Source: Bigelowiella natans CCMP2755
Lineage: Eukaryota > Protista > Cercozoa
Direction of reading: 5' to 3'
DNA: 64,000 bases
Assembly (NCBI GenBank): GCA_000320545.1
Contig: ADNK01000981.1
Coordinates: forward strand, 62,001 to 126,000
The stretch's first letter is position 1. The number at the start of each line of letters is the position of its first letter. Below the pieces are notes generated by a model. The model made no database searches, was not told where the DNA came from, and saw only the letters and a program-made list of their open reading frames with translations. Made by a program: the position numbers and the translations under genes. Positions 7,150 to 54,285 of this stretch are shown in pieces.

Positions 7150-7565
7150 GAGCAGGTGCACTACAATCGGTTTCCGATGCGCATTGCATCGATCATGCCA
7201 CCCAGAGATGCGTGATGCGGCACGTGCCATGCTCGCTAGACGCTAGCTAGCTAGCTAGGCTGCAGTGCGCGATCGAGGGCCATTTGCTGTTCTCTCTCAG
7301 AACTTCTAGATCTATGCATGTTTCCAGTGTGTGGACTGCAATGCGATGCCGGGCACAGCTAGACATGCAGCACCGCGACACGTGTAGATGAACATGCTGT
7401 CAGCAAACAATGCAACCAACAACGAAGAAGCCTTTCTGGAACAAAATGACGGCATTTTGCTCGTGATGCAATCTAGCAATGTGCGTGAATCATCATGGTA
7501 CAAGATCATTGCTCATTGGTGCCAACTAGCTAGCTAGCATGTGGAGCGCAATTCTAGCATTTTTT
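7150..7565. other. CTAG/CATG/TGCA palindrome-rich island 1 (convergent spacer)
   Basis: (CTAG)4 at 7243-7258 and (CTAG)3 at 7526-7537, with dense CATG/TGCA/CACGTG. Lies between the stop at 6699 (+) and the stop at 7607 (-). Confidence 0.85.
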
Positions 7566-7606
7566 GGCCAACAATTGTGTGTGCTTTCTACGTTCATTGA
7601 ACTCCT

Positions 7607-10600
7607 TTACAAGTTTTTGTGTGCAAGTGAGACCACAGAAGCCTTTCTCTTCCTTTCGTTCTCTCTTTGCATTTGGTCTTTCCGTTCTCGCTGAGCACCA
7701 GACGTCTCATCTCGTACGTCGAAAGTTACGAAAAAATGCTTCTGGATTCTGTTGACTTTCTTGAGCTGAGCGAGACTGTCTAGTTTCGTTGCCACACAAA
7801 CATCGTTAATTTTCAGGACACGCCAGCCGAGTCTTACCCCTACTTTTTGTGCTTGGGGGTACAATTTAACTACAGTGTTATTATCGCCCAACTTGAAGAT
7901 GCCTTCGTCAACATCAAATTCGTACGTAAGTTTTAGGTGAACACGGGCACTTTTCTCACTGCATGGGCTGCACAGAATGCAACATGGACAGAAGACAAAA
8001 ATGAATGGAGCAGTCATGACAGCCTCGAACCACGTGATCGTAATTACGCGCAACACAATGTCCTGTAACCATGTCAGGAATGCTGACGTGACAGTTTCTA
8101 GACCAACTCCACCCTGCACGTTTTGGTACGAAAGAACAACTGTGATGAACACGCAACCAACTACGGCAACGATGCAGAACACCACGCCCACAATGTCCCA
8201 AGAACTCCATTCGTAGTGTTTCATGTCAGTTATCTCTTTGGCTGATCCTGGCTTCGGTCTTCCCATCAAAGGCCCGTTCATGGATTGTGCGGAAACGTTC
8301 AAATCTGAATTTCGCCTACGAGCACTGCTGTTCTCTTGTTTCTGAGTAGATCAATAAGATACCAGGATATTTTTCAAGAATTGCAATAAGAGTTGTTAAT
8401 TGAATATGAAACGAGTTGAAAGGAGAATATTCGCATCTTAATTGAGACAGGGTATCAATGTTCAAACTCTATGCACATTCACACACTTTCTTCCATCCTT
8501 GCTCTCCAAGTGCTGCTCCATATGCCCCCCCTGCTGAAGATCCAGCGATTATAATATTTTTATCTTTCTCATCATCGTTTTCGTCTTCGTCTTCGTTTAT
8601 GTCCTCATCATCCACACGATCTTTTTATTGAGGGGCAGGAGAGATCGCAACACAATTGAAGATGCGTATGAATTCAAAGTTTAGCATACAGAAATGGAAA
8701 AGTCGCAACTGTTCTCGAATATAAACGGAAATTTTTGAATATTTTACAAGAATCACGTGCTTGGGTACCTGGTTCGTCTCCTTCTTCTTCTTCCTATCAT
8801 CACAATTATCGATGCAACAGAGGACATATCATGTATAAATTTGTGTACATGTAAATGATCCCTTCAACCCCCTGTTTCTCCTCTAAACAGATTACCATGT
8901 TGATGTTGATAAGGTCAAATTCACTTAATGCGATGCTGACAATCCAGAGCACCCATGGTAGCGATGAAGCGATGCCAACAGCTTCGAATCTCACTCTGTA
9001 TCTTGATGGAATGTCTCTATTGAAGATTGAACTTATAATGTATGGTATAGGATAACCGATCGCCATCGCAACAAGGGCAATAGCAACAGGCCCTTGAAGA
9101 AAGCCTAATTTTTGCTCGGTTCCCAGCTGTGGATAAATGAGAAATCGTCCGTGTTTCAGCAACGAATAATGATGAATTCGAAAACAACCCCAAAGGAAAG
9201 GATTGATTTCTTGATAGGGCTCAAAATAAGACACATTTACTTTCGTATGATGTAATATAGTTACTAACCCTTCCCCCCCTTCTCCCTGTGCTGATACAAC
9301 AGATACGCGCAATGCATCAAATTGACGTTTTGCTTTACCAAGAGTGAACAAACAGCAGCAGCGTTAAACATTAGAACCGCCAGAATCAGCAGCCTCTTCC
9401 TGGCGTTCAAATGGTCACCGGGCATTCGTAGCCACGTAGAAACCCAAGGATGTCTTCTACGCATAGCAAATTTAACTGATTCTTTCCAACTTACCACAGA
9501 ACGAGGGTCAGCATAGTGCCTTTTACCTGATAGTAGTACCAAGGAAATTGAAAGTTTGATATACCCACAGCCCGTAACCAGAATATTAATCGAAGGATCA
9601 AGAGGTTTTTCGACATCGAAACACTCAAAACACTACCCCCCCCCCCCCCCGGCCCTTTCTCTTTCTTTGCGCCAAAAGGAGAAAATGCGAAATATACGTT
9701 GCTATCAATACTGTTGTTCTTGCTGTTCCATGTATTGCGTTTGCTCTCCTACGTGATTGATTTATCCCGCGGTAGAACTCCCGTTCAGTTGCATGGTTGA
9801 TTTCCTCAGTCCCTACTGTTCCCTTATCAAGATAGTAAGCGGCTGGGAACATTATGATCAATAAACCAACGAGGGCTAAGGTCATAGCCATTGCCGGATT
9901 CCTTAAAGGGTTATATGTGTCGCTATTCTCAGCATCGCTGGCAGATAATGTATTCACTTCCACCCTGAACGCTGGCTGGGTACTGAAAGTTGACTCTCCT
10001 GGCTCGAGATTAGATGTTTCACATATGTGGTTTCCATTTGAGCTTAAACCTATTTATGTAGTCATATGGGATAAACCTCTCAAATACATTAGCACTAACT
10101 TTCTACTGTTCATTTGTTGTATTATATACCTTTGTACTCGACACCCTCAGAGCTCCACGTCTTGGTAGTATTAGACCAAACAGCACATTCACGAACGGGT
10201 GTGCCTTCTTCGTTCGTAGGTAAGGAATCCCCGTCATCATCGGTTGGGATGTGGATTCGAAACGGGGCAACTGGCTTATGCGTTATGGGAACTTCCTTTA
10301 CCTCTGCGTAGTTGGGGTTGGTCAGGCGGGGGGCGATTAAAAGGAAAACATCACATGACAACCAGCACTGCAACGTGTACATGACCAAATTCGAACACAA
10401 AGTAGAAGCCCTTCTTCGGGACATTTCCACCTACACTTGCATTTTACCAGCTATCAACACACACACGCTCGACTACCTCCTGCCGCCGTTTTACCCTTGA
10501 TCTCCACTATACCTAGACCACTGGTAAATGCACTAGTGATGTTCCTTGGGAATGGGAACAACGAGCCGCCCCTTCCTCCCGTAATTGCAATGTATCCTAG

Positions 10601-11531
10601 TTGCACGCTCGCAAGGCCTTCCACTGATGAAGAGATGTTGAGAAGATCAAACTCGACTGTGGCGCCGTCGATACTTGTTAGAGATGCATTGAATTCTCCT
10701 TTTGCGCTCATTATTCGGGATGAAATAGAAACAGTTGCCATGCCCGCCTGAGTGGATTTACCCGTCACTATCTGGTCTTCACCTAAGAAGGAAGGTGAGT
10801 ATAAACAACGTCATCGGAAAGAGTCTGATGCACAGTCGCTCGTGCGAACACTAATTCATAAATGTTCTATAAATGCTGAACGACCTCTCCAAAGAAATCC
10901 CTATCTCAACATTAAAATTACGGCTGAGACTAGATCTATATTCCAGCGGGCTTACATACACTCTTTTCGATGCGATTACGATTGCTAACGAACTATCCTA
11001 ATGCGCGACCTGGAAGGAGCGATGAAGAGAGAATCGTCGACAGATTAGAAAGTGTTCTTTCAAGTCTATCCGCATCTGTAACCTCTGCAGTAGTCGCATT
11101 TGTGGCAGTGAGAAGGTTTGATATAGCCCCGCTTGCAGAAGCCACAGTATTTTCCTCATCGTCTGCTGACATTTCTCCTGGATTGAACGAGGTGATAAGG
11201 CTCTCCATAATGTTTAAGGTTGTTGATTTCACACTCGCAGTGATCTCATCTGCACGAGGAGATGTTGTGACAGCTTTAGCAAGTCCTGCGATGACGGGGG
11301 CGGACAGCGAGGATGCTGTGCTGTCACTGGTGACTGCGATGTCAGCGACTTTGTTCAGCATTAGGAGCCGTGATTCCGCTGCAGCAGATGCTGAGCTTTG
11401 GGATAAACCAGAATTAGATGAAAGGAACGATGCGATCGCAACCTTTTACACGAATACAACACACACACACACACACACACACAACCACAACCACAACCAC
11501 AATCACAACCACAACCACAACCACACAAGTA

Positions 11532-11573
<42 letters not shown>

Positions 11574-13010
11574 GTGTGTGTGTGTGTGTGTGTGTATGCG
11601 TGCGTGCGTGCATAATGTGAGGCGGGGAGAAAACACATGAATAGTTCATCATCTTTCTGCATGTATTTTTGCTTAGTTTTCGTACAAAAAGCAGAAGTGA
11701 GCATAGGGGTGCGATGATGATGAGAATCGTGCACATAAGATTCAACCCAATCTCTATATATTCCTCTATTTAAATCAATGTTTGTCTACACATCCCTCCC
11801 TCTTCTAAAAATGACGACCACTTCTGGCACAAATGACTGCGTATCGCCCTCCTGCAACCTCTCCTCAAGTGCAAGATTTGCTTCGGTAAGGTTTAATGCA
11901 GTTGGTTGTGTGACATTGATGGAGAAGTAATAATACCCTTCTGCACCAACATCGTCACTAACAACTGCTCTCATCAGCATCTGAGGAGAGGAGTCCAAAG
12001 GAGCTGCAAGCTTCGTTTTGTAAGACGCGAGTTGACGAAAGGCGCACATGTCCAAGTAGGTAGCTCCCTGGGTGAAGACATATGTCGTCGGGGAAGAGAG
12101 CACGGTCTGCAAATTCTCATTGGTGACAGACTGATACTTATAACGGAGAGGCAGGTCCTCCGCATCGTCGATATATCCCTCACAGGAGAGAATAAACTCA
12201 GTCTCTAGAGCTACGCCAACGAGTGGGGAGGACGCACAGGTGCCTGACCCAGGTGCTGAATTGATCCGGATAGACACTGATGCAGATCCTACTGCCTACA
12301 TTGGAGAAGGAAGGTACATCGACACAGACTATCAGCTGGAGAGCTGAGGCCTTTAATACACTGTTTCATTATCAACCGCCAAGTTACCACAATCACAACA
12401 CAAGACGCAACTAGGTGTAGTAGCAATATGTTCAAAGGAAAATTACCACCACTCCCCCCGAAGTCACCGATGATTGGACAGAAAATTGGTACGTTTTCCC
12501 CGGAATGAGCACGTTTGGTGCGATGATAAGAGTTCGCGCATCAACTTCCGACCGCAAGTTGGCACGATTCAAGATATTGAAATCCGACGCATCAGTAGAC
12601 CAGGAGAGGGGGAGGGAGGCATCATCATCGCCGCTTAAGCTGGTAATGCGTATGGCCTTTCCATTCAAAACCAACTTCTTTCCTGAATCATGAGCTTTCG
12701 ATGCTAGATTGACGTTGAGAGTCACCTGTAATTAGAAATGCGGACACAGGGAAGCAATACATTTGACGCTGCTGGGAACCTTATCTATACTTTTATCACA
12801 TTATCCTCTACTGACAGACGAAGTGTGTTTGCGTGTTCAAAACACAACGATACGGATGCTACTATTTATTTGGTAGTTGTGCCTTTGGAGCAGGAAGAGA
12901 GGTAGTGATGAGTGTCTGTGACGCCATTGCAATGGCGGTCTGAGATCGATTTGTGGAGACATTCACTTGAATCTCGTATCCGCTGAGATTATTCGAAACA
13001 TAATATCTTT

Positions 13011-13042
<32 letters not shown>

Positions 13043-16000
13043 CGTGTAAACATGCTAAGCATATTGAGCATCGAATCTCAGCTGGTTCGGCTTGATATTG
13101 TCTCCTATCTGCTAATGTCTTCATGTGTCGTATGACAGTATCACACTTTCTTTTGCCAGGCTAAGCTAGCTTATCTCTATTGTTTTCCGCTAACTACCGA
13201 TCTCCAGCGAGTTGAGCGGTTGACAAAGTTAGGACAGAGCCATTAGAATGAAATGGAGTGACAGACGTGGAAGAGTTGTCAAATAGAGACCAGGAGAACG
13301 AAAGGGTTGACCCAACGGGATATGCAGGATCGACAGAAGATGATGCGTCGAAACTAACACTGTAGGGAGACTGGGAGATTACTGGAATAGTGCGGGAAGT
13401 ACCTGATTATAAATTGGAAATGTCTTCTTAATGCCCATCGGAGTCTCCAATCGAATTTATCATCTAGCGAGTAGCAATAAGCCATGTTTGGAACTTCCCT
13501 GATGGCTGCACATTCCTCTCACGTGAACACACACGAGATTGCTCACCTCCTGCAATGATAGCCTCAAGTGGCTCGTCTTCGACATGAAGAACGATAGTCA
13601 CTGACTGCTGACCAAGGGTGGCATTCGTTTGCAGTGAAACAGTTTTGGCTGTGAATTCAAGCAGGTACGTTGAGTATGTCTGAAGAGAGAAGGCTGGAAT
13701 CCGTAGATATGCAGAGCGTGGGTTAGATATTGAGATAGGGGGCCCTGCGAGCTGTGACCAGAGGACGTCGACACGGAGGTTGTTGACGCATTTCGGAGTA
13801 CGGACCTTAGATGTAACCATTTCATTTCTTTGTTTGGGATCCAATATAAGCACCCAATTTGATCCAATATTTGCGATAATCGTAAGATCCCCTTTTTTTT
13901 TTTTCATAAAACATGCTCTACTCCGCGACAAAAATGATAGAGGAAATCGCAAGGGGGCAAGGACTCCGGCATCTAAATTTTCATGACTTAACACTTGTCA
14001 TTGTTACATATTGATTCTGCATCACGCTGCACATTAACCTGAATATTAATGTCGGTTACTCTGCTCCTTTTCGTAGTGATATTGTTGGAGCTGGGAAGAG
14101 TAAGAGAGGGAACTATGGCACTCACCTTCCATACAATGAAGTTATATTAAAGATAAACATAATGATCATAGTAAAGATAATAGCAAACCCTAGACTGAAA
14201 TGGCATAAATTCTTACAGGAGACGAAGGAACTTCACGATTCAGACTTACTTTCGAAATTTCAAATCGGGTTGATGCAGAGTCCTTCAGCCAATTTGTAAT
14301 TGATAGCGCAACTGTGACATCCTCACCAAGAGGTACCACGCTTCCGTTTAGAGCAAAAACGTTTGTAGTTGTCGCCTGTGCGAAGGCGTTTAGTGAATTC
14401 TTCCACCCTGAATCCGTATGGTTTACGATGCTCCAGGAGTATCTGAGACAGATGCAGCTCTCAATGGTGAATCTTTTTGTGTTTCACTTTCGTAATCAAT
14501 GCAGACAGTTCCAAGACAGCATTCGAACCCAAAACAAGCGGCACTCTAGCACACACGCACTCAAGGTATCAGATGCATTATTAAAGAGAATAAGAGAAGT
14601 GATATATAAGAAAAATAGTAAGCCAGACAAAAGAAAAGAGAGAGAGGAGGGGGGGGGGCGGAGGAAAGGTATAGATTGGAATAAAATTAATAACACAAGA
14701 TGCATTAAGGACGTTTAAATAATATTCTTCCATTTTCATCTAAGATGAAAACTTTCATGCATACTACAACATTTCCTGCCCTAGCACTCTTTTGTGTTCG
14801 CATTATAATCCCAGATGGATAAAACAACGGTAAGATTACGTGAAGCTCTTAGCCATTGACCCTTTTGTATTAGCTGTTAGATCGACCACGCCACCGCACG
14901 TTCCAATAATTGTATCTCCCACAATGGTAACTGCCACGGCTGTAATCGTCGATGAACGTAAGACTACCTAAAAGATGATTCAATCAAAATATGCGTTTAT
15001 ACAAGAGTCGGAAGTCATAAAAATATGCGAAGGCAACAGAAATTCGGATGGGAGATGAAAGAGCGTGTGGCAGTGTTCACCATCATCCACAAGTGATGAG
15101 GAAGCAACTAAGTAACAGTGTAATAAAGTTGAATTACCACAGTAGATGCTACATTGGTACTTAAACTATCGGCAGATTGGATTGAACCAGAGAGTAGAGT
15201 CAACGTATTCCCAGGCACAAGAAGGAAGTTTTCGCCCATATTGACAACAAGAGTTGACGGATCTTTCCAGTAACAGCTGCACAGAAACATGGAAAAGTAT
15301 GGAAAAGTGAGTACATTAATACATATTGGTTTTTCATTGATCCGTGCAAACATCTTTGGATAAAATAAATGAACATCATGTGAATAGCGACGCCAAGCAA
15401 CCAGGGTAACTCTAACAGCAATATATCGAAACCATTCAAGAACAGATCCATTATTCCATCTTTTATTTCGTTGAATTACCCGTAGTTAAAGCCAAGTAGA
15501 GCCACAGAAGATGTCCCAAGAATCATATCGCAAGTCAATTTCGAGCTAGTATAAGACGGCTGAGATGTCGCGAGCTGAAAGCCTATGTGTACTGCTTGGT
15601 ATGTCCCTGTAAATATCGCCGATCTAGGTGTAGGCCCTACTGGACTACTGGAAGGACCACTGGAAGGACTACATGTCTGCACTGCCGGGCTACTAGATGG
15701 GCTTGCACTAGGGGCCGAGGTTGAAACACCAGGGCTAGCACTTGGGGCCGAGGTTGTAACAGCAGGGCTAGCACTTGAGGTCGAGGTTGTAACCAGCAGG
15801 CTAGCACTTGGGCCTGAGGTTGTAACAGCAGGCTAGCACTTGGGGCCGAGGTTGTAACAGCAGGGCTAACACTTGGGCCGAGGTTGTAACAGCAGGGCTA
15901 GCACTTGGGCCCATGGATGGGCCGACGTTTCCAGCAGCAGGGCTAGCACTTGGGGCCGAGGTTGTAACAGCAGGGCTAGCACTTGGGGCCGAGGTTGAAA

Positions 16001-17115
16001 CAGCAGGGCTAGCACTTGGGGCCGAGGTTGTAACAGCAGGGCTAGCACTTGGGGCCGAGGTTGTAACAGCAGGGCTAGCACTTGGGGCCGAGGTTGAAAC
16101 AGCAGGGCTAGCACTTGGGGCCGAGGTTGTAACAGCAGGGCTAGCACTTGGGGCCGAGGTTGTAACAGCAGGGCTAGCACTTGGGGCCGAGGTTGTAACA
16201 GCAGGGCTAGCACTTGGGGCCATGGATGGGGCCGACGTTCCAGCAGCAGGGCTAGCACTTGGGGCCGAGGTTGTAACAGCAGGGCTAGCACTTGGGGCCG
16301 AGGTTGTAACAGCAGGGCTAGCACTTGGGGCCGAGGTTGTAACAGCAGGGCTAGCACTTGGGGCCGAGGTTGTAACAGCAGGGCTAGCACTTGGGGCCGA
16401 GGTTGAAACAGCAGGGCTAGCACTTGGGGCCGAGGTTGTAACAGCAGGGCTAGCACTTGGGGCCGAGGTTGTAACAGCAGGGCTAGCACTTGGGGCCGAG
16501 GTTGTAACAGCAGGGCTAGCACTTGGGGCCATGGATGGGGCCGACGTTCCAGCAGCAGGGCTAGCACTTGGGGCCATGGATGGGGCCGACGTTCCAGCAG
16601 CAGGGCTAGCACTTGGGGCCGAGGTTGTAACAGCAGGGCTAGCACTTGGGGCCATGGATGGGGCCGACGTTCCAGCAGCAGGGCTAGCACTTGGGGCCGA
16701 GGTTGTAACAGCAGGGCTAGCACTTGGGGCCGAGGTTGTAACAGCAGGGCTAGCACTTGGGGCCGAGGTTGTAACAGCAGGGCTAGCACTTGGGGCCGAG
16801 GTTGTAACAGCAGGGCTAGCACTTGGGGCCGAGGTTGAAACAGCAGGGCTAGCACTTGGGGCCGAGGTTGTAACAGCAGGGCTAGCACTTGGGGCCGAGG
16901 TTGTAACAGCAGGGCTAGCACTTGGGGCCGAGGTTGAAACAGCAGGGCTAGCACTAGGGGCTGAGGTTTGTGAACGAACTAAAAACATATTCACATCATT
17001 TCGCTGCCTTAAGTTTCAACTCAATAATCTCATTTTCCTTACCTTGTAGAGGCATGAATGAAACCAGTGCTAGTGAAGCCAGAAGAACCATTTTGTTCTT
17101 AGAATGTGATGCCAT
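7607..17115 (-). CDS. Polycystin-1/PKDREJ-like receptor: signal peptide, mucin-like repeat stalk, REJ domain, GAIN/GPS-like motif, about 6 TM helices, C-terminal PDZ-like domain
   Basis: Exon 1 (17115-17043) MASHSKNKMVLLASLALVSFMPLQ is a signal peptide spliced to VRSQTSAPSASP at 16978. REJ hallmark SAPGSGTCASSPLVGVALETEFILSCEGYIDDAEDLPLRYKY (~12260-12140). GPS-like CAVWSNTTKTWSSEG (~10185). PKD1-like HPWVSTWLRMPGDHLNARKRLLILAVL (~9450). Hydrophobic helices at 9890-9830, 9090-9030 and 8200-7980. Stop at 7607. Confidence 0.85.
15693..16966 (-). repeat. Coding 33-bp tandem repeat (about 36 units) encoding TSAPSASPAV(T/S), with 45-bp variant units containing TSAPSMAP
   Basis: Unit gggctagcacttggggccgaggttgtaacagca is repeated nearly perfectly. 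Units at 15790-15900 are degenerate and carry indels. Confidence 0.97.
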
Positions 17116-17777
17116 TGAATGGTGGTAGAATCTCATTGTTCAGCTTCACCCTTTTTTTGATTTTCGAAGACTAAAATACAAGATGATTCCCCGCGCTAGA
17201 TTCTTTGCCTGTCCTATCAAAATACGTACTTCAAGATTCAAATGCAGCAACAACCGTTGCGAAGACACTTGTGATCTTGTGATGGTGGTTTGAGTTTGCA
17301 TAGAGTGATAAGCACGGCATCGTAATCGCTGTTTCGTAAACCAAAAACAGAAAATTGAGGTGATTTCCTAGGATTTCCTAGGATTTCCTCTAATTATTTT
17401 TGTTTACCGGTACTCGTATTATGTTGATGCCATCAATCATTTTATTTAGATCTATATATAATCTAGATCTAGATCTCTGTATTTCCGTTTAGTTTTTCTT
17501 TCTGTTTCTACACTTAGATCTTAAGAGACATCTAAGGGACAAATGATGCCAGTTTTACATGTTTTTTTTCTCTGTCCCGAGGTGCCGCGTGTCGATCGGT
17601 GATTCGGTGATTCCTCGAGATTCTACCGATATTCGCGTCAGTACCGGGATTTACCTAATTGGTCGGAACGACAACGAGAACAACGGGCACTGCATACAGG
17701 CAGAGAGATGATGTCGGGGGGGGCATGAAACAAAGATTTTCATGAATTTCAAAATTAGTAAGAGCCCTTAGCTGCAA
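17116..17777. promoter_or_regulatory. Putative bidirectional promoter between the REJ-like and TOR1-like genes
   Basis: Head-to-head ATGs are about 660 bp apart and the spacer is microsatellite-free. It contains (GATTTCCTAG)~2.8 at 17362-17389 and AGATCT repeats at 17448-17521. Confidence 0.5.
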
Positions 17778-18741
17778 ATGAGATCGATGGCAGTTCGTTC
17801 CTCAAAGGCGAAGCTCGTCAACGAGCAAGAGAAGGCTTTCCAAACGCATGGTAGTTTTCTATAAACTCCTCCAACGGTTACTCCATTCCCCCCCTCCTTC
17901 TCTTTTGAAATATCCTTTTGTGTCCTGTGTGATTATTGATCTATTATTTTACAGTTATTGGCTCGTTGACAAAGCTGGATTCAACGCACACTGGTCCTTT
18001 AGGCTTGAAAGAGCTGAAAACAACCATCGCTCAAATTACTCCAACTCAATTGCCAATATTCCTGGTTGTATTCGGGAAGGGAAGGATTTATTGTTGGAGA
18101 TTGTAGGCAACAATTACAGTGTTGCTGCTGCTATATTTGATCGTACGGATCTGAGCACGTTGTTTGATCCATCCACAATTTGTGTGTTTCAGAGCGCTCT
18201 ATGCAAAATTCTCGACGACAGGCCCATTTCCACCCGAAAGGAGTCGGCGTATATTTTTGGTTATTTAGCAGGTAGTACTATCATTACATTTATATGTATG
18301 CACCTCAACCTTGAACTAAGGGAAAATTTCAAGTGGCAAAACACTTCGTTAAAAATATCCCTTTGTGTCGTCGCAGCTGAATGTATCTAACTGATTCTAC
18401 CACACTCATCATATTAGCAATGAAAGGTCTCGCCCTAGCTCCATTCTTAGACAAAATGATCAAAAACCTTATCGAAAGAGCAAATGACTCAAATTTCGAG
18501 GTTCTCTCCTACATGTGACTTGTATGCAGGCACAATAGACAAACACACATAAGAAATGAATGAATAAATGTGTGGTTGTCCCTTGTGTGGGGGGCGGAGG
18601 CTAGTTTGTTTGTTCTATGTGATTTTACGTTTTCTTTGAACTGAATTAGGTTCTAGATAGAATCGCTACTTCAATGGCTCAGTTTGTCAGGCATATTACT
18701 CTCCCAGTAAAAATACAAGAACACCACCCCATGTGTATATA

Positions 18742-18780
<39 letters not shown>

Positions 18781-20749
18781 ATATAATGATATAATATGTG
18801 TCTTCTTCTGCTGTGTTTAAAAAGGCTTACCATTTACGTACGACACAAATCGGCAAGAGAGAAGGACGCCGAAACCGAGTTGATCGGTAATGTTTGTAAG
18901 CATTCTTGTTTGACTAACAACCTTAGATGGCCTACTAATGTACAATAACTTAACTACATATCCAGTCAAACCCCAAGCGTGGTGAAGGAAAATTTTGACC
19001 ACAACCAAGAGTACCATGACGACACAAAAAGAACCCTATTTTCTGTAGTCGGCAATGGTGACGATGAAAATAATGACGATGACGATGACAATGAAAGAAG
19101 GAGAAGGGACTTTCCTCGCAACTCCGATGAAGAAGAGGGGGAAGAAGGTTTTTCTGTAATTAAAGCCAAGAAATCTGCAATAAATGAAGAGATAGGAAAG
19201 CAAAAGGGACAGAAAAGTAGTGATGGAAGGGGGGAGAAGAATGGCGTCTTAGAGGATGATGAAGATAGTGACGAGGAGAAAAACTCGAGGAGAGTATACC
19301 ATCATGATGATCATGGGGGTGGTGGTGGTGGTGGTGGTAACGTGGATCTAAATGGAAGAGGAGGCGCTGTGAGCATAAAAAGAAGTTCATCCTTTGATCG
19401 ACGTCATCTTAGTAACATTAGAAAGAATAATAATAGCAGCAGAATAGCAGGTACTAGAAGCCAGTCAGCAGTCGGAAAGCGAGGAGGGGGAGAAGAAGAA
19501 GGAGGAAGCATATCCATGTCAAGCAGCCCTATACTACCATTGGGGGGTGGGGGAGGAGATGGGTTGGACGCTGATAACAGCATCAGGAGAAGCAGCAGGA
19601 GGGGAAGGAGGGAAAAGGGCGGAAGGGACAAAACACCGATACGCGATCCATACTTACCACCGCATAACTCTCCAGCTGGCTTGGACATCTACCTTGGAAG
19701 AATTCTTCCTGCATTTTCATCAGCAACGAGGTTTCGTAAACAAGGAGCAGCCTGGTGCTTAGCCCGTATCATCCATGTCTCTCAGGCTACTCCTATCCTC
19801 GTCACCTCAGTGTTTGATAGGATCTACACTACTCTCCTCAAGCACATTCGAAATATGGGATCCTCTAAACACGCACACCCAAACGCACACTACTTGTCAT
19901 GTCTAAGTAATTTGATGCTCTTGGCGAGGCAGCTGATGGGGTCGCATATCACTGAATGTATTGAAGCGATTGTTGACCTACTAGCCTCCAGGGAATGGAC
20001 AGTAGTAAAGGCTGCAGCAGAAGCTCTCTATGCAACCGCACTCTGTATTGTGGGGGGAGGACACATTGTTCCGTGTTCCTATCGTAATGCCGTTACGGAT
20101 AAGCTGCAGAAGGTCAAGCATCACAAAGTGTTACAGGTTCGCCAAAGTATTAAGGGAGCTCTGTGTGCATGGAAAAGCCTAAGAGAAGTTGATGGGGATA
20201 GGATACGTAATCATGGTGAGGCTGTAAACCACGAATCATTTGATTTCTCTGAAATAACTGGAGCAAAAGGTGCTGTATTGGGTCTTGAGTTTAATGCATG
20301 GGCAACTGAGATTTTGCAACGAGGAGAAGGAGGTGTGGTTCCTGATCACGAACTAATCAAGAAAGCTCAAAGAAGAGACGGTGACGGCGACGACGACGAT
20401 GCTCACGATCAGTCATTATTTGATATTTCAATCGGAAAACACGTCAATCCGCTGATGACGCCACAACAAACACTTCGCAATAGCATGGCAAATGCTGCAG
20501 CAGCATTTAGAGGAGGAGGGGGGAAGGACCGATATGCTCCACTAAGAGAACATCGAGACGAGAGGGGCGATGAGGATAACCAGCAGCAGTTCTCAGACAC
20601 GAAGAAAAGCAGCTTGCATATTCCTTCAACAGATCTGCACACTCTTCAAAAGGATCTTAAACGAATAACAACGCTTGTAAGGAAGGTAGTAGTAGTAGTA
20701 ATAGTAGTAGTACACGTTACTACAACACTACGTGCGTGCGTGCATGCGA

Positions 20750-20807
<58 letters not shown>

Positions 20808-21125
20808 TTGTGTGAGAATTCGAATAGCACAAAATAAACCCATTACGCTGCTCCTTAAATGATGGATTATCTTAACATTAATATTTATTCCAGATGAATA
20901 ACTGCCACAAAGTGATTTTGACACGAATGGACGACCTCCAAACAGGTAGTAGTAGTAGTAGTAGTAGTAGTAGTACCACTATTATTATGATGACATAGTA
21001 GGGTTATGGCGGTGGAAGAGGAAGAAGAAGAAGAAGAAAAAGAAGTTTTGTTCGTTTATGGTACAAAGTACAACTTGATAGTGTCTGGCAAGAGCACACA
21101 CACACACACGCACACAACTAAACGC

Positions 21126-21165
<40 letters not shown>

Positions 21166-21782
21166 CATGTGAATCTGGCTTCAAGGCACTCTCGCATCGC
21201 CTGATAGACGTTGAGAGAAGGGTAGTAGTACCAGTAGTAGTAGTTTGTAGCAGTAGTAAAGCTATACCGGTGATCAAGTATCATCCTTTTGGTTTTCTTG
21301 ATGATGAATGCTTGAATATAGCAGTAGACACACTTGGACAAAGTACATGCACGAGATACGTCATATGAATCCATTGTATAAGAACATGTTAAATAACTTT
21401 TACGTACATCTTAAATATGTTAGAATAATGCACACACTTCATCATCATGATAATGTGATTGGCATTTAGGTGTCTCTTGTGCAAAAGTCTGTAGAAGGAA
21501 CATTGCCTGCAGAACAAGCAGTAGCACAGGGAGGAGGAAGAGGAAGAGGGAACAATATGGATAAAAATAATGCAAACGGCCGTGACAGCAAGAACAACTA
21601 CATGAGAAGTAGAGACCTTATATCATCGCCTGCACTTCACTCTTCCTCCTCTCATAATCATCCTCTACACGGAGGAAACAACCCTAACCCATTTAACTCC
21701 GGAAGAGGAGCAGCAGGAGGAGGTGGTGTGAATTGCATGCATCGTGACACACAACAATGAACACATAATTAGATCTTTTGCT

Positions 21783-21818
<36 letters not shown>

Positions 21819-21950
21819 TGTGTTTGTATTGTACCCGTGGACTATGTAGCGAGTTGTTAAATGTGTGAATGCACGTGTAACATCCAATGATCCGTATAAA
21901 TACCGATCACATACATCCTCTATATCCTTTCTCTCTACATTGATGATGTG

Positions 21951-21996
<46 letters not shown>

Positions 21997-22290
21997 ATGT
22001 AGGGATTTGGAATTCAGCTGTGTTTCACCTGCGTGTGAGAGAGTACGACAATGCTTTTCGAAGGTAGTAGCTTCTTTTCCAGAACAACAGCTTTCCACCA
22101 CATATATACGATAGTGTAATTAACACACACGCACAATATGTATGGCAGAGTTTTGGATGCACGAGATGAGCTTTTGCTAGTCCGGTTACTAGGAAGAACA
22201 CAAGCATTTCCGGGTAATAAAAGGCAAAATGATGATCATAATTTAGCACCTTACTCATGCACACAAAAGCATATTTGCACGTACAAGTAT

Positions 22291-22341
<51 letters not shown>

Positions 22342-22613
22342 TATTTTCAATATTTGCAGAACAAGTATTGTCGGGATTACATCCAAATACTGCAGAGAGT
22401 TTATTTAAAGCCCTTTCTGATATGATTGGTAATATCGATGTATAGGCATATAAACACACTTCTGTGTATGATTAACGCGACTGTCAACAACATATGTATT
22501 TTCAAGGCAGTCCATCAGCTCTACATCACCTCTCCCTCTTTTTCTTTCTCTTTCTCTTTCTAATTGACACACACGTAACGCACACACAGACAGACAGATA
22601 GGCAAACCAACAA

Positions 22614-22660
<47 letters not shown>

Positions 22661-22662
22661 AA

Positions 22663-22720
<58 letters not shown>

Positions 22721-23147
22721 TGTGTGTGGATGCATGATTACTTCGTACAAAGGAGGGCGAACATTTGTGCGTAACACGTTGCCCTGGATATGCGCAGCTG
22801 TGAAGGTTTCTCTTTCTCAATAACCTTATCTTTAGTTGAAGAAATCGTAACAGATGACGGGACTCATCATACTATATATTTCCCTCTTACTTTAAGTTAT
22901 CGAATTGATTAAGCTTTCATCATAACCACAGATGTCTCCGGTACTACCAGCAAATATTGAGACGGTGAAAGCAATAAGCAACGGCCTAGCTGTCTTGTGC
23001 AAAGATTCGACAACGAATATAGGCCATCAAATAGCTGGAATTGCCGCAATGTTTTCCAAGGCACATGTGCACAATGCAACAATGGAGCAACAACCACAGT
23101 TAGTTCAGAATAATCCACCGGCAATTAGTAGTAACACGCGGTATTGA
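17778..23147 (+). CDS. TORTIFOLIA1/SPIRAL2-like HEAT-repeat microtubule-associated protein
   Basis: Spliced N-terminus VIGSLTKLDSTHTGPLGLKELKTTIAQITPTQLPIFL/SALCKILDDRPISTRKESAYIFGYLA/LAPFLDKMIKNLIERANDSNFE resembles the TOR1 N-terminal HEATs. The window also encodes IVDLLASREWTVVKAAAEAL...HKVLQVRQSIKGALCAWKSL and a coiled coil ending ALSHRLIDVERR. C-terminal IWNSAVFHLRVREYDNAF-RVLDARDELLLVRLLGRT resembles the TOR1 C-terminal domain. Confidence 0.85.
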
Positions 23148-23269
23148 ATAGAAATAGAGAAGATGACGAATATTAGTACGACAAATATCTTAATTTACGA
23201 TAGTGATATTGCCTAGATATCACCAACCCGACAAGTAGTACTAGGAATGGAAATAGAAGTGCAGTTGTA

Positions 23270-24605
23270 ACAGTAGCTAGGGTAGTAGTGGTGCGTAGTA
23301 GCAATCTAGCGACAATGGACATTATGTCTAGAGATGTCAACCCTGATGCAGCTTAAAGAAGCTGCTGCCGTGCCTCATGTTCGTACGTAGAGACTAGCTC
23401 TAGAGCTATATACTCCTCATGATCAGGATCCTTGGACAAGCTTATCAATTTTGTGCGCGCGTGCATGCAACGCTAGTACGTACATCTAGACCTAGCTAGC
23501 TAGAGACCGAATAGACATGCTAGTATGCTACATCCTAGACTTCAATTATCTATATAGATTGTTGTCAACTACATGCCATGCATGCATTGAGGTACGATAC
23601 ATACACAAGTTAAACCGGTTTGTCTTCACATGTATTAGCTAGGCTTGGCTAGTACGCTAGTACGTAGCATGCTCTAGTGCTACGTACCTACCGTCATTTC
23701 CATAGTGCGGTTTCGGAGCTACGCTACTACGACGCACAACAACGCATACATATGCGTGTATATCTCATATCAGATTGCGCAATCAATTGAGCGCAATCAT
23801 GAATCGCAACGACGAGACAAACCGGTTGACAAAGGCTGAAAAGGATTCTAGAACTGTTGCGCGCAGCGCGCGACAACATCGGACACTTGAGGACGCTTTC
23901 GCATGCATGAAGCACGTGGTGGCAGAAACCAACAGACACAACATTAGCGCTGACATGTAGCCGCTGCATTGCACAGCTACATCAGGATGACCATTGAAAA
24001 AATTTAATTGTTCATTACATCCGTCTCATATCAATGCATGTACATATATGCGTATACTAGCTAGCTAGCTAGCTAGATACACATACATACATAATGTGTA
24101 CATATACATTAGCCAAGAACCGGTGGCGAGATTAGGATAAAGCTGTCTAGCTTTGTTGCTGCGTTCGCACATTCTGGCCACTCGCTAGCTAGCTCTGCTT
24201 TGACATATAGCAGTAGCATTTTTTGCTAGATTGCTAGATTGTGGCCGCTGTGTGACATGCTAGCATGCAACTAGCTAGCTAGTTAAGCACTGCGAGCCTG
24301 ACCTCTCGTGCACTCATTACGCATTAACAATCTACATCCAAACATCATTTAAAGCAGGTCGCTGTCGCGCATGCATGTACTAGAATGCATGCATGTGTCG
24401 ATGTCAAAAATTCTCATCTCCTAATTGCTTTGAAGGGATGCTACAGCTAAATCTAGCACGACTAGACGGTGAGGTTGACGAGCAGCAGCAGCAGCAGAAA
24501 GAGAAGGAGGAGAGCATGCATGCATGCCACAATGCATGCCGCCATGGCTAGATGAGCTACGATGGATTGTTTCATTACATGCTACCTGACTCATCATGTC
24601 TAGCT
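23270..24605. other. CTAG/CATG/TGCA palindrome-rich island 2 (convergent spacer)
   Basis: (CTAG)3 at 23492-23503, (CTAG)5 at 24057-24076 and (CTAG)3 at 24271-24282, plus GCATGCATGC and GTACGTAC runs. Lies between the stop at 23147 (+) and the stop at 24610 (-). Confidence 0.9.
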
Positions 24606-24609
24606 GCTG

Positions 24610-26643
24610 TTAGCAACGTTCAAAAATTCTATAGAGCTTCTCCAGCGCAGCAACCTAAGAATCATGGGGAATCGGCCAATTATGACAAACAGGTACGAAG
24701 AAGACGACAACGATGTCACTTAGACAGCAGCAGCAGCACCATGTTGCCTGCCTTGGCAAATATCGTCGTACATTCCATTCGTCATCACTTAATACCTTGA
24801 CGACACAATTCTCCTTCTGAAGAACGTTTGGAGGATGAAAGTCGGTTCGAAAGGCTGGCAATATTGTGTGCTGTATAATCCACTTGAGAGATACATTGTC
24901 TCCTCGTGAAGTGGTAGTGGTAGTAGAGTGGTCTATGTACATCTTGGGTTGAATCTACGACAATGAACGACACAACGCAACACACAACCAACAGTGGGGA
25001 GAATAATGACATATCTGTAGCATGTTATGATCGTACAAATATTATGATCATACTACGGCTATTACTACTACCTTATAAAAAGCTGCCAATTCATCGCAAA
25101 TACCCCTAAAGCACGGTTTTTCTTCATACCAGTTAACATCAAGGCTCAGTTTCAGGAGGAAGCTGGGAAGAGCCCTAAAGACCACCAAGTAATATCAGGA
25201 CTACTACTACTAGTAGTAGTAGTACTACTACTACTACTACTAGTAGTCGTCGTCGAGTGTGCAGGAAGTAGTGCAGCAGTATCATAATAAAGAAAGGAAG
25301 GAAGAGGGTGCACTTAGATATATTAGTGGTTTGGATATTCTTCTTCTTCTTTGGATAATAAACGAGTCACTAACGACGACTACTGCACCTACTACTTCCA
25401 CTACCACCACTACGACTTATCACTACTAGCAGGAAATGAGAAGCAAAATACCAATGTAATTGTAACAACTATATGTTTGTATATCTATCAAAGAATAACA
25501 CAACAACATGCTTTAGACTGATGGGCTGGCTGCTATCTATGTATCTATCTTACACCGAACAACCCACCATCATTAAATGATAGTATATTGATCGCCATTA
25601 TCATCACCACCATCATCACCATCGTATTCATCGTCACAGCAACGTTCAGTTGGTTAATACTTACTTACTAAGTTACTTACGTACCCCATTGGAGGGACAT
25701 AATTCTCAATAATCTCTGGAAGCGATCTCAGCTCTCCATTCCCCGTAATATCGATTGAAAAGTACTCGTTAAGCATTGCACTTTTAGAGAGCAACAGCTT
25801 GGTCAATTTCTCTGCGATGCTATCACATTCCTCACCCATATCCCCACCCCCTTCCTTCTCTAATGCCATCCGCAGTAGCGGTGTAATGGGGGCGGGAGGA
25901 GAGACTGCAAACGATTCCATTGAGGAGAAGTCGATCAATGCTCTCTCATAGAATAAATACTTTGATATATTGGGGATATGAGTGAGATATAGTCCAGTTT
26001 TGTGCTGCAAGAGGGCATATGTGTCATCCACACACCCTACAAACGTGTTGTCCCCTAATATCTGCACCATTCAAATTTTAACACAGTAAGTAACGTGTGT
26101 GTGTTTGTTTTTAATGCGGTGGCAGAGAGCTAGTTCATTCATTTATGTTGTTGTTGCTCTTTTTCCTCTCTTCAACCACAGCATCCACGACAACTAACCT
26201 CTACCCACCCACCTCCTGGATATTTTCATCACACATAGCACTGAATTCAGTCAGCAGCTCTTTTACACTTGTTAGGTTCGATCTTGTAGCAGCAATCTAG
26301 CAATCAATCAATCGATCAATCAAAACACAATAAAAAACAGGGTGGTGGGAGTGGTGGTTGGTATATGAACAGTGAATAAGGAGGTCATCAGCAATTTGAC
26401 ATATATATGATGATAATGATCATAATGATCATAATGGTGATGACAACATTGTTTACATATTCGATTATACTACTAATTCGATTACTTATACTACTACTAC
26501 TACTACTACTACTAAACTGCAGCTACAACTACAACATATAAGCAGGTCGTTGCTACTTCTAATTTTTGCTCCTTAACAAGTTCTCAATTACTAAAGTTCA
26601 GCATGATGATGACGAAAGTATAATTTATGCAACTACTAAATAC

Positions 26644-26675
<32 letters not shown>

Positions 26676-26691
26676 AATGATCCAATCGTTG

Positions 26692-26724
<33 letters not shown>

Positions 26725-27825: not shown

Positions 27826-27865
<40 letters not shown>

Positions 27866-28138: not shown

Positions 28139-28182
<44 letters not shown>

Positions 28183-28671: not shown

Positions 28672-28707
<36 letters not shown>

Positions 28708-34524: not shown

Positions 34525-35479
34525 TACTTAGCTGATGCTAAATGCTTAGTCGTTCTATTTCTTCCAATCGCGCTTCCTTCGCCTCCTCCAAGTCCAAACA
34601 AAAATTTTAGATCGTTGGAAGTTATGAGGGATACGTATGATAGTTGTTCTCTTTATTCGATATTTCCTTCTCCTCTAGCTTTGCGGTTTCTTGGCCAGGG
34701 GTAGGAGGGTGTAATTCGAAAGGTGATGCTCTCGATCGTTCCCTCCTCTCTCTCTAAATGAATCTACAGCAGTAACAACGATTTTTAAGTCACAATCTAT
34801 TTTTTAAGATCTCCATAGCTCTCAACAACACCATTGCTTATTTCCAAATTAGGCCAATACTTCAAGTAATTCACCAGCATTCGACCTAATCTAAATGAAA
34901 TCTGCAGACTATTTTGAGATCCTTCGCCATGCAATCGACAAATGTAGGTGTAAATCTGCATAAACAAACCAGCAACACATTGACTGAGAATTGTCTAATT
35001 TTACATTCTACGACAAGAACAGGAAAAGTCTTTATCGATAAAATATAATTCATTTACGACAACATGCTCGGCCAGAAGGGATCCTGTAAGTCCTTGAGCG
35101 AGCACAAAACTTCGGGAGGCATTGGGATCCCGGAGATTCCACAATAAGTGTGCCGTGTTGTTGCAGCATTATTGCCAGTAGTTAGTTAAATTTTATAGCC
35201 GACAATTACCATCTTATACGACGGCACGTGGCATACTGTCGCAAGTGCGAAATATTCTGTGTTTTTACTAGATTTGAACACGAAAGTGGAGTATTCTACT
35301 GGTAAATCGGCTACTCACACCGGCGACTCGTCGTTCCGATAGCACGCGTGGTGGGGGAGAGATAATACTGGAGATAAGAGGAGAGGGGTGAGGAGTCTCT
35401 CGACCACAACCACGATCACTCGAACACAATGAGCGAGAATACCGGCTAAGAGGGGGAGTTTTCAGAAACAAAAGCTTAG

Positions 35480-35961
35480 ATGCAACTTTTAACAACAACA
35501 ACGACAACAACCTCGATTCTATTCGTCATATCAAGCCTAACGATCGCTTCACCGCATACCCCAATCACGCGTCCAGGGGTCCCTTCTTCACAGTTACAAC
35601 TCACATGCTTTACATTGCCCTTACTCTCAACGATGCCATCGAAAGCAGCGATCCAACTCGTTGGAGCTAGAGGTCATCATCTGTATAACAACTACAAATT
35701 ATTACGGAGTGGAAGTGGAGAAAGAAAGTTAAGACATATATGGAGGCCCCGTAGTAGCACCGCTCTTTATTCTTCTTCTAGTGGTAAAGAAGTAGGTAAG
35801 AAGGGAAGATGTGATAAGGGAGTTGTGTGTAATAAAAACATCGTTGTGCTCGGGGGATCATTTGGTGGATGGACAGCGGCAAGACGGCTATCGGATTATG
35901 CTTATAATTCACAAAAAAGACCATTCAGGTGGAATACAAATGTTTTTTGAAGATGATGCCC

Positions 35962-41379: not shown

Positions 41380-42000
41380 AGCTACTATCTAGCTATCTTC
41401 ATTGATCAGATGATGCCGCATGATCGAACATTGATGATAAGACAGCAGTACACACTAGCACATCACAATGTCTCGTTGTTATCTGCATGTATGATGCGTT
41501 GGTCTGCTGCATTTTGATCGCAACCCAGTTGTGATGCTGTTGCTGCTCTCTAGCTGCTAGCCTAGCTAATGTGCACAGAGTATCGTACGACAGAAGCAGC
41601 GGTGTCGGAACGGTTGCGCACTGTGGACAGCACAATAACGGCACGCCCATTTTATTCTAGTTATTATTTGTTGCCTGACACTCTGTGCAATCACATCGAT
41701 CAGGCTAGCTAGCTAGCATGCAGGCGTCGTCATTGTGCACATCTAGTGTCTAGTTATTAGCATGTGCGGAGCGCTTATTGCAAGTCGAGTAGCGACACAT
41801 CTAAACAATGAGCGCTGCAGCTGTGCGTGTGCAGTGTTGTTTGCCCAAGCGTGCTACATCATGATGAGCTTAGGGCATCTCTCACCCACTTCTATTTTCG
41901 ATTCTAGTTGTTTCAAACAAGTGAACCATCTATTTGTATATCGTTCCCACCAGCTTTCTTTAACAAAGCGTGTGTATATCTAGACATCTGTTGTGACAGA
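41380..42000. other. CTAG/CATG/TGCA palindrome-rich island 4 (convergent spacer)
   Basis: (CTAG)3 at 41705-41716 followed by CATGC, with many CTAG/TGCA/GTGCAC/TGCGCA. Lies between the stop at ~41147 (+) and the stop at 42606 (-). Confidence 0.8.
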
Positions 42001-52738: not shown

Positions 52739-52786
<48 letters not shown>

Positions 52787-53094
52787 AGTAGTAGTAGTAG
52801 TAGTGGTAGGAGTAGTAGTTATGCGTTGTAATGAGAGCTATTATTCCATGGATGATAAGTGAAAAATACGTAGTTGAATGAACGAAGGGAGAAGGTAGAA
52901 GCTAGATTGTATTGTTTTTAGTCCCAATCACATACTTCTGACGCTTGCTGCTATTTCATCAATAATCTTGTTAATCTGATAATAAAAGGGAATGAAGAAA
53001 GAAGAGAAGAAGGGAACAAACTAATAACAGCACACATAACAATTAGAAGAATATATAGCAGGTTGGCCAACACACGAAGACAGACAAACAGAGA

Positions 53095-53317
53095 GAGGGA
53101 GAGAGAGAGAACTTAGTTACCTAGCTTTCTTCTATCTTTCGCTCGTAGACGACGTATTCTAATTTGCCAAGCATTAAATCAAAAGAATGATGAGAAAACA
53201 GGAGAGAGAGAGAGAAAAAAAAATTAGTTACCTAGCTTTTCTATCTTTCACTCGTAGACGTATTCTTTTCGCCAGGCATTAAATCAAAAGAATTATGAGT
53301 AAACAGGAGTAAACAGG
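53095..53317. repeat. About 110-bp imperfect tandem duplication in the 3' region
   Basis: ttagttacctagcttt..ctatctttc.ctcgtagacg..tattct...gcattaaatcaaaagaat.atgag.aaacagg occurs twice, starting ~53113 and ~53224. Confidence 0.9.
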
Positions 53318-53699
53318 CGTCTCTTCGCGACCACTTATTATTACCTTTGCTCTATTTTTATTCCAATATATTCTATCATCATCATATCAAACATCTGCCT
53401 TATCTTTATTATTTGATATGAATTAATAGATTATTGTCTGGATAGTGCTTCTTTATGCACCCTCGTGGTTATTCTCGCTTCGGCGGACGATTGATTTTGA
53501 ATTTGAAGATTAGGAAAGAGGACACTTTCCCAATAAAAGGTTAAAAATACATGCATACAAGTGCAATATTTTATATTTTGCAAAAAATGTGTTTTGTGTT
53601 TGAATGTGTGAGGAAATACTGCATTTGTTATTTAAACTTAACCATCACCTTGTCGTGAAGGAGCTTTTATCATCGTCAACTTCGATCATCTTTCATTAG

Positions 53700-54285
53700 C
53701 ATTGACAACTTGTAGCTGTGGATCGCTACGCTACCACGCACTGCTAGCTAGCTAGATCGACTAGAGCTAGCTAGCTAGCTAGAGCACATGGAACTTTTTA
53801 GCTGCACCAGCCTAGCTAGCTAGCTAGGTGCATCCAAAACGTTGCATGCCAGCATGTCAAGACGATGTCTAGATGTGCTGGTGTGCAAATTGTGCACCAT
53901 GTCAATTGCAGTGCAATTTTCACACTCACACTGCACGCATGTGGCGTGCTAGCGTGCAGTCAATGCGCACATCTACATGGACAATTCTAGAATTGACTCT
54001 GGCCATGTCTAGCGCTAGCTGTGTTGCACACAGATGAGCGCGTTACAGATTACGTTGCATGCACACATGAGACACGCAAAGTAATGTGCACACGTCACGT
54101 GAACTGTCCATTGTCCACAGTGCTAGTCACATACGCAGCTAGACTCATCACACGAAAAGGTGACATGCAACACACACTAGCACATGCTAGCATGGCATCG
54201 CATGAAATCACTTGCCTGCCACCATGCTAGCATGGCTAGACAGATGCACACATTATAGCATGGACAATGTGAGTGCATGCGTGCG
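53700..54285. other. CTAG/CATG/TGCA palindrome-rich island 5 (convergent spacer)
   Basis: (CTAG)3 at 53744-53755, (CTAG)4 at 53767-53782 and (CTAG)4 at 53812-53827, with dense TGCA/CATG/GCTAGC. Lies between the UBZ gene 3' end (+) and the sulfotransferase 3' end (-). Confidence 0.9.

Follow-up and report, generated by a model that had tools for sequence, protein, structure and literature searches.

Palindrome-rich islands between converging genes of Bigelowiella natans carry 8-bp CTAG insertion scars

Why does the DNA between the tails of converging genes in an alga change to a composition dominated by short palindromes? The question is raised by a 64,000-nucleotide stretch of the Bigelowiella natans CCMP2755 genome (the window throughout this text), which makes up positions 62001–126000 of a contig that was assembled over its whole length of 157,959 bp (C2756). 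An initial annotation had described five tail-to-tail spacers, here islands 1 to 5 (Table 1), in which self-complementary 4-mers prevail and CTAG recurs in tandem, and had proposed that they form a strand-symmetric signal that stops transcription or marks a boundary. We find that the islands are real and that many of their CTAG words are the cores of 8-bp insertions flanked by a duplicated target. With moderate confidence, we propose that these untranscribed spacers have gathered the footprints of a cut-and-paste agent with a 4-bp stagger, on a background partly shaped by TpA hypermutation.

In a regular-expression scan, runs of at least three CTAG units were found in each of the five spacers (at least one per spacer) and nowhere else in the 64 kb, as had been noted by eye. 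There are 11 runs of three to five units and two runs of two units, all of them inside the five spacers. We compared motif density between the 3.65 kb of islands and the remaining 60 kb of the window. CTAG occurs at 28.5 per kb in the islands versus 2.4 per kb in the rest (11.7-fold), followed by GCGC (7.0-fold), AGCT (6.6-fold), CATG (4.9-fold), CGCG (4.4-fold), TGCA (3.5-fold) and GTAC (1.75-fold). ATAT and TATA are rarer in the islands, at 0.3–0.4 times their density elsewhere, where both stem from the common (TA)n microsatellites. The microsatellites typical of the rest of the window are missing from the islands, apart from a (GT)16 tract at 31785–31816, and the islands do not align with one another beyond the CTAG runs, so that the earlier impression that they are not copies of one sequence was also borne out. 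The palindrome-rich islands are thus a real feature of this DNA, and statistically an overwhelming one. One likeness was seen between islands outside CTAG: part of island 2 (23904–24040) resembles C2756:145779–145921, in another island 60 kb away, with 78% identity over 137–148 bp.

A sixth CTAG-dense zone, at 15.7–17.0 kb, had been overlooked. It was ruled out as an island because its CTAG density is due to a coding tandem repeat of 33 bp with one GCTAGC per unit. The repeat (15699–16968, minus strand, with a start near 17137) has about 38 units that encode an 11-residue repeat rich in Ser, Thr, Pro and Ala, and it is preceded by a signal-peptide-like start and then a GTAAG donor. Judged from its sequence, the product is probably a secreted mucin-like protein.

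What sets the island CTAGs apart is their flanks. Identical 4-mers border the CTAG in 38 of 104 cases in the islands versus 2 of 147 outside, where chance would give 1 in 256 and offset controls gave 2. The unit is therefore an 8-bp insertion, made of CTAG and a 4-bp direct duplication of the target. Other palindromic cores (CATG, TGCA, GCGC, GATC and others) showed no such flanking duplications, by which CATG, TGCA and GCGC were ruled out as the scar cores of a second element. Outside runs, the window holds 23 sites of the form X4-CTAG-X4 with varied targets; 21 lie in the islands as first named, one (31746) falls within spacer 3 as defined by RNA (see below) and one (26293) lies outside any island. 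In silico removal of the perfect scars took away 35 of 105 island CTAGs and lowered AGCT.

The whole contig has 76 scar sites, which group into about a dozen islands and a few zones poor in TpA; 55 of the 76 are not part of a run. The length of the duplication is sharply 4 bp (54 observed versus about 2 expected), with duplications of 3 bp (2 observed), 5 bp (3 observed) and also 6 bp near background. When the 55 empty sites were reconstructed and the logo symmetrised, the first target position was C in 54% and A in 31% (together 85%), the fourth was G in 54% and T in 31% (85%), and the flanking bases were G or C in 69%. The scars thus have two features expected of an excision footprint, namely a direct target duplication of fixed length and a weak palindromic target preference. 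The latter is what a dimeric transposase or integrase typically gives. Sites without and with the insertion can also be set side by side, in a single case with a 5-bp variant of the duplication: of two Harbinger-like paralogues (L012 and L017, described below), one reads CCGTT/GCCT and the other CCGTT-CTAG-CCGTT-GCCT. Scars occur in or beside Harbinger-like and hAT-like relics on other contigs and in the TpA-poor zones of the contig studied here. In word counts over the 91.4-Mb assembly, with the reversed word as control, (CTAG)4 was found 1159 times versus 22, and the 12-mer of one example scar (CTGTCTAGCTGT), the target of which carries two stacked scars in island 3, 1064 times versus 8. We estimate that the genome holds about 10,000 to 30,000 scars.

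Scars do not account for the whole composition of the islands. After their removal CATG, TGCA, GCGC and CGCG remain equally enriched, so that scars are not the source of most palindromes in the window. In the islands healed in this way, 59–67% of steps alternate between purine and pyrimidine, versus 50% outside; CpA/TpG are in excess (rho about 1.7–1.8), as is GpC (rho 1.56), and CC/GG are depleted (rho 0.48). Mixed alternating tracts, many of them in island 2, are 3.6-fold denser in islands (for example 23452–23469, 23742–23763, 24034–24057 and 54273–54294). In B. natans, silent integrated viral DNA is reported to change its TpA to CpA or TpG at a roughly thousand-fold higher rate, other foreign sequences are reported to share the TpA-poor, CpA+TpG-rich signature, and TpA-specific A/T-to-G/C hypermutation has been seen in mutation-accumulation lines of the species (Mettrop et al, bioRxiv 10.64898/2026.01.13.699255). 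With CTAG masked, islands 1 and 5 fall within the cut-offs of that study (rho of non-CTAG TpA 0.16 and 0.29, rho of CpA+TpG 1.60 and 1.87; alternation 0.67 in island 5), whereas islands 2, 3 and 4 miss them on TpA (0.80, 0.68 and 0.62, with CpA+TpG at 1.34, 1.57 and 1.54). Counting CTAG gives a TpA rho of 1.01 for the five islands pooled, so that as a set they lie outside the cut-offs. When TpA editing was simulated on intron-like DNA of this window, it yielded the CpA/TpG excess and about two thirds of the density of CATG and TGCA. TpA hypermutation explains part of the background, and the skews in GpC, GCGC, CGCG and CC/GG go beyond it.

Where the islands lie with respect to transcription can be read most directly at island 3. 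One raw RNA-seq run and three sets of run contigs were mapped to 29501–35500. The plus-strand gene on the left (GT..AG introns at 31080–31236 and 31336–31542) and the minus-strand gene on the right (five CT..AC introns within 32864–34012) each end in a poly(A) site supported by reads (Table 1), and raw reads cover 31741–32500 to a depth of 0–0.09 and the exons on either side to 7–46. Island 3 thus coincides exactly with the stretch that separates two converging poly(A) sites, and it is absent from mature RNA; it is the one island at which transcriptional silence was tested, and there it was found. The first scar begins 6 nt beyond the cleavage site at 31740, and the last ends about 100 nt short of 32503. 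The divergent spacer at about 30.7–30.9 kb shows no CTAG excess.

The initial annotation had taken all five spacers to separate converging genes. At island 3 the claim now has direct RNA evidence, while at the other four junctions it rests on the strand and coding scores of open reading frames (ORFs). ORF strand orients the genes well on the right side of islands 1, 2, 4 and 5 and on the left side of island 2, and less securely on the left side of islands 1 and 4. To the right of island 1 a minus-strand exon has its stop codon at 7607; to the right of island 2 there are minus-strand ORFs and then minus-strand introns at 29.6–30.3 kb; to the right of island 4 lies a robust minus-strand gene (42.0–48.7 kb, ORFs up to 646 amino acids), and to the left of the island the plus strand is assigned from ORFs at 35.4–41.2 kb. 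Pfam searches of the flanking ORFs gave some faint matches and one solid one, a TORTIFOLIA1-like gene on the plus strand to the left of island 2, whose 627-amino-acid open frame (18979–20862) carries a TORTIFOLIA1 N-terminal domain (PF24714, E = 4.8e-16). TORTIFOLIA1 proteins are a microtubule-associated family best known from plants. A self-trained map of codon usage was too noisy, and the bias in splice-site words too weak, to settle gene orientation. No clear tandem (head-to-tail) junction was found in the 64-kb window, and for this reason 'convergent' is inseparable here from 'behind a 3' end'.

Table 1. Coordinates of the islands, CTAG runs, example scars and poly(A) sites (positions in the window)
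Feature	Position	Strand	Remarks
Island 1	7150–7565		12 CTAG, 3 removable perfect scars, two CTAG runs; 4 TpA outside CTAG
CTAG runs (at least 3 units), island 1	7243–7258, 7526–7537		
Single scar	7469–7480		CAAT-CTAG-CAAT
Island 2	23270–24605		Largest; 36 CTAG, 10 removable scars, three runs of 3–5 units
CTAG runs (at least 3 units), island 2	23492–23503, 24057–24076, 24271–24282		
Poly(A) addition site, gene left of island 3	31740	+	12 reads go on into a run of A
Island 3	31741–32502		Whole spacer between converging poly(A) sites; 21 CTAG, 10 removable scars, two runs
CTAG runs (at least 3 units), island 3	31919–31930, 32198–32213		
Two stacked scars in one target	32131–32150		CTGT-CTAG-CTGT-CTAG-CTGT
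Poly(A) addition site, gene right of island 3	32503	-	8 reads with a run of T before it
Island 4	41380–42000		13 CTAG, 3 removable scars, one (CTAG)3 run
CTAG run (at least 3 units), island 4	41705–41716		
Island 5	53700–54285		23 CTAG, 9 removable scars, three runs; strongly TpA-poor outside CTAG
CTAG runs (at least 3 units), island 5	53744–53755, 53767–53782, 53812–53827		

The two components meet in the scar cores, which are themselves edited. A scar shared by paralogues that are 95% identical reads CACG-CCAG-CACG in one and CACG-CTAG-CACG in the other, and on the contig CCAG or CTGG stands between perfect 4-bp duplicates in 24 places, about half of which fall in zones poor in TpA. In the published lines, CTA/TAG contexts do mutate, making up about 10% of the listed de novo TpA mutations by an approximate hand count. 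Edited cores and CTA/TAG mutations together rule out an absolute protection of CTAG from TpA editing. By our own count, editing has reached about 13 of the 46 scars in TpA-poor zones, and bulk TpA there is more depleted; the scars are therefore on average younger than the editing, or somewhat poorer substrates for it. Such zones, poor in TpA and rich in CpA/TpG, with 4-bp duplications around both CTAG and CCAG/CTGG cores, are seen outside the window at C2756:41801–43300, 128001–130000 and 140501–141900; within the second, at 129.3–129.7 kb of the contig, there are short matches to the Harbinger-like locus L017.

The scar is most likely the footprint of a cut-and-paste transposon, since a cut-and-paste transposase leaves this combination: a stagger of fixed length, a core that does not vary and a palindromic preference in its targets. 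In this view the five islands are the sole sizeable non-transcribed DNA in a gene-dense stretch, written on by two mutational processes. In the mechanism that we envisage, an enzyme would cut its target with a 4-bp stagger and its cargo would be repeatedly inserted and then removed, each visit leaving the duplicated 4-bp target around a constant CTAG, with a net gain of 8 bp. The ends of the transposon may contribute CT and AG, or they may leave self-complementary CTAG overhangs; re-annealing of such overhangs would account for the uniform core. Runs of CTAG would form by insertion into an earlier CTAG, followed by slippage. The pile-up in spacers could reflect selection against insertions in exons, short introns and short divergent promoters, or a preference of the element for this chromatin.

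If scars are footprints, an element with ends that match their core should exist, or have existed, and we searched for it. On the 158-kb contig, terminal inverted repeats that end in CT..AG or CTAG and lie between 4-bp target duplicates were no more frequent than in controls (21 versus 19, artefacts of CTAG runs aside), and short internally deleted derivatives of the form X4-CTAG...CTAG-X4 numbered 11 versus 7.6 expected. Genome-wide profile searches returned 15 Harbinger-type (DDE_Tnp_4), two pogo-type (DDE_1) and three hAT copies, and no match to DDE_3, MULE or Transposase_21. The piggyBac-type transposase (PF13843) also had no match in the genome, in a search whose control likewise matched nowhere. 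Harbinger elements make target duplications of 3 bp, pogo elements of 2 bp and hAT elements of 8 bp.

The relics found are of interest in their own right. The Harbinger-type loci L012–L017 (contigs C777, C1193, C2929, C1777 and C1458) retain 1–17 TA in about 3.4 kb (rho 0.01–0.08), and a large share of the surviving TA lies within CTAG, several of these being perfect scars; from their sequence they look like heavily edited transposon copies. The two pogo-type loci, L018 (C2661:200580–204035) and L019 (C2845:4546–8001), are 99% identical over 3.1 kb, with open frames of 543–600 amino acids and mild TpA depletion (rho 0.6), and may represent a young, possibly still mobile element. The hAT-type loci L020–L022 (contigs C2149, C2351 and C2036) are 87–90% alike, with TpA rho of 0.09–0.35. 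They share the end ...GTGCCCAGC(C/T)C(T/C)A, which has the classic form ...CCCTA in one copy, and scar-rich DNA starts 20–100 bp from this end in two copies. A 408-bp miniature inverted-repeat transposable element (C2756:36634–37041) is bounded by perfect 17-bp terminal inverted repeats (CACAAGTCCGTCAAACC) and sits next to a neighbouring island, in a zone poor in TpA; its ends (CAC..GTG) do not fit, and it was rejected as the source. The relics lie within or next to DNA rich in scars, so sequence of this kind does receive mobile DNA, and the positions of the relics fit a view of the spacers as places where mobile DNA can survive.

Several observations weigh against transposon footprints on a TpA-edited background. 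Neither the 158-kb contig nor the transposase families recovered yielded an element that combines CT..AG or CTAG ends with a 4-bp target duplication, and the pogo-like, Harbinger-like and hAT-like copies were set aside as sources, their visible ends not being CT..AG. The island CTAGs left after removal of perfect scars have to be assumed to be decayed or nested scars. Selection alone may fall short of explaining the confinement to spacers; introns would tolerate an 8-bp scar. Among the 21 de novo indels of the published lines (3,132 line-generations) none contained CTAG, where by a rough estimate at most about one would be expected at a steady long-term rate; given the low power of this set, the result speaks for a process that is not frequent in culture. 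As to the background, simulated TpA editing produced neither the GpC rho of 1.56 nor the GCGC/CGCG excess nor the CC/GG rho of 0.48, and it leaves the alternation (0.59–0.67 versus 0.50) unexplained because transitions cannot raise it. Double mutations from TA to CG in the same line were absent among 226 TpA-class mutations (scaffold 10: all 211; scaffold 146: the first 15 of 20). The published table has four pairs at adjacent positions, all from different lines, and gives no support to same-event doubles as the source of the CpG, GCGC and CGCG excess.

The de novo insertions of the same lines hold a further pattern: in Supplementary Table S2 of the preprint (bioRxiv 10.64898/2026.01.13.699255), 7 of 15 end in ACA (for example +GACA, +CAACA, +ACA, +ACACA and +CATTACA), and several of the listed insertions alternate between purine and pyrimidine. 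They may point to another stereotyped process of insertion or to slippage within alternating tracts.

The initial annotation favoured a selected, functional, strand-symmetric signal, whether as a terminator, as a boundary of chromatin or topology, or as a site of DNA modification. It has in its favour that five of five tail-to-tail spacers carry a run of (CTAG)3–5 while introns, exons and divergent spacers carry none, and that RNA depth falls to about zero within island 3. Yet at this junction, one of five, both poly(A) sites lie upstream of the island, so that 3' ends are formed before it is reached. The islands have no common position, order or number of motifs and no alignable sequence; target-site duplications mark insertion events and not a conserved word; the cores decay through the local mutation process; and the same scars occur in transposon relics on other contigs and in TpA-poor zones of this one, and are thus probably not restricted to gene junctions. 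Nor is there a shared structure. Hairpin- or cruciform-forming DNA had been another suggestion, and fold energies compared with shuffled sequence were inconsistent between islands (z = -0.6 for island 3; island 5 reached z = -5.7 only because its CTAG runs pair with each other), with no long inverted repeats beyond pairs of CTAG runs. We regard such a signal as distinctly improbable. What the evidence does back is the option that had been listed last, the footprint of a local mutational process.

That process need not involve a conventional transposon. A domesticated transposase or integrase, or error-prone repair of breaks with a 4-bp stagger, could add a templated CTAG in silent or topologically stressed DNA behind converging genes, which would agree with the failure to find a matching element. 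The 4-bp stagger is that of type II topoisomerase cuts, whose mis-repair gives duplications of 2–4 bp, and converging transcription concentrates topological stress in these very spacers; in the published lines, moreover, 17 of 21 indels were intergenic, at a rate about 9 times the genic one. However, the islands show no excess of plain 4-bp tandem duplications that lack CTAG (CTAG, CATG and GT repeats aside), so that the idea of topoisomerase-type duplications filling them was rejected. In addition, an insert of four constant letters calls for an equally constant template, such as element ends provide and break repair does not, scars also lie within transposon relics on other contigs, and the published indels lack CTAG. 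We consider a host process of this kind unlikely. It is more doubtful still that the composition as a whole, with CTAG, is an end state reached by TpA hypermutation and microsatellite slippage on formerly (TA)n-rich spacers, the editing enzyme having spared CTAG. The strong depletion of non-CTAG TpA in islands 1 and 5 and the small share of CTA/TAG contexts among de novo TpA mutations speak for it; at the Harbinger-like loci the fraction of remaining TpA that lies within CTAG ranges from 2 of 2 to 0 of 1. But sparing can make neither 4-bp direct duplications around CTAG nor the empty and filled pair of paralogues, and the edited cores and CTA/TAG mutations show that CTAG is not immune. As a full explanation this end state is largely refuted, and we give it very little credence; it survives as a contributor to the background. 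A further reading, in which an enzyme system, either a new mobile element or a transposase captured by the host, writes CTAG and a 4-bp copy specifically behind poly(A) sites, tens of thousands of times, and with TpA editing builds a sharply bounded class of spacer that perhaps came to serve mobile DNA as a landing pad or converging genes as a boundary, also seems to us unlikely.

The scars resemble several known systems in part. As in the footprints of Tc1/mariner elements (Tc1, Sleeping Beauty, Minos), a duplicated target surrounds a few constant letters, which would stem from the element ends, the uniform outcome would come from joining the short overhangs of both ends, and each visited site would keep a small net insertion. 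Tc1/mariner elements, however, duplicate TA and are themselves known, whereas the scars duplicate 4 bp of almost any sequence around a palindromic CTAG core and number in the tens of thousands, no element was found and DDE_3 transposases have no match in the genome. With piggyBac and its TTAA overhangs the scars would share a self-complementary 4-nt overhang that, as we propose, would re-anneal and ligate cleanly; but piggyBac restores its site exactly, without a scar, and its duplication is the fixed word TTAA. Type II topoisomerase mis-repair, as in yeast top2 mutants and a human tumour indel signature, has the 4-bp stagger and the torsional stress expected at convergence in common with the islands, and differs in producing plain tandem duplications, where here a constant CTAG always parts the copies. 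Base J at kinetoplastid convergent strand-switch regions and the boundaries of convergent arrays in dinoflagellates are also special features at places where transcription units converge. Those, however, involve polycistronic units and an epigenetic mark or a boundary, and the genes here are monocistronic with ordinary poly(A) sites upstream of a feature that consists of piled-up insertion scars. The TpA hypermutation of silent viral DNA (Mettrop et al) is found in the same species with the same TpA-poor, CpA+TpG-rich signature, and the scar cores show its expected products, CCAG and CTGG. That paper is about integrated viruses and foreign genes, and editing cannot make the scars, the alternation bias or the GpC excess of the islands.

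In the literature searched we found no paper that describes CTAG scars in B. natans, and looking for excision footprints with CTAG brought up no matching element family. The hypermutation preprint (bioRxiv 10.64898/2026.01.13.699255) mentions no CTAG, 8-bp insertions or gene-tail spacers, and the Amorphochlora genome paper has no CTAG, palindromes or converging genes, with one mention each of 'intergenic' and 'convergent', both unrelated. What is new here is the RNA-defined placement of island 3, the sharp duplication length with its target logo, and the split of the palindromes into two components, together with the link to published hypermutation, including its limits, and the editing of scar cores.

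For this alga, the islands mark untranscribed DNA between converging genes and can be used as such in annotation. They also carry a caution, since palindrome-rich convergent junctions look designed and mutation explains them better. If the scars are transposon footprints, the roughly 10,000 to 30,000 estimated for the genome would be an unusually clean and dense record of the visits of an element, from which target choice, the use of safe havens and the age structure of transposition could be read in one assembly, even with the element itself missing. Two processes related to genome defence, the scarring by mobile DNA and the editing of TpA, meet on the same silent DNA, and edited versus unedited scar cores provide an internal clock.

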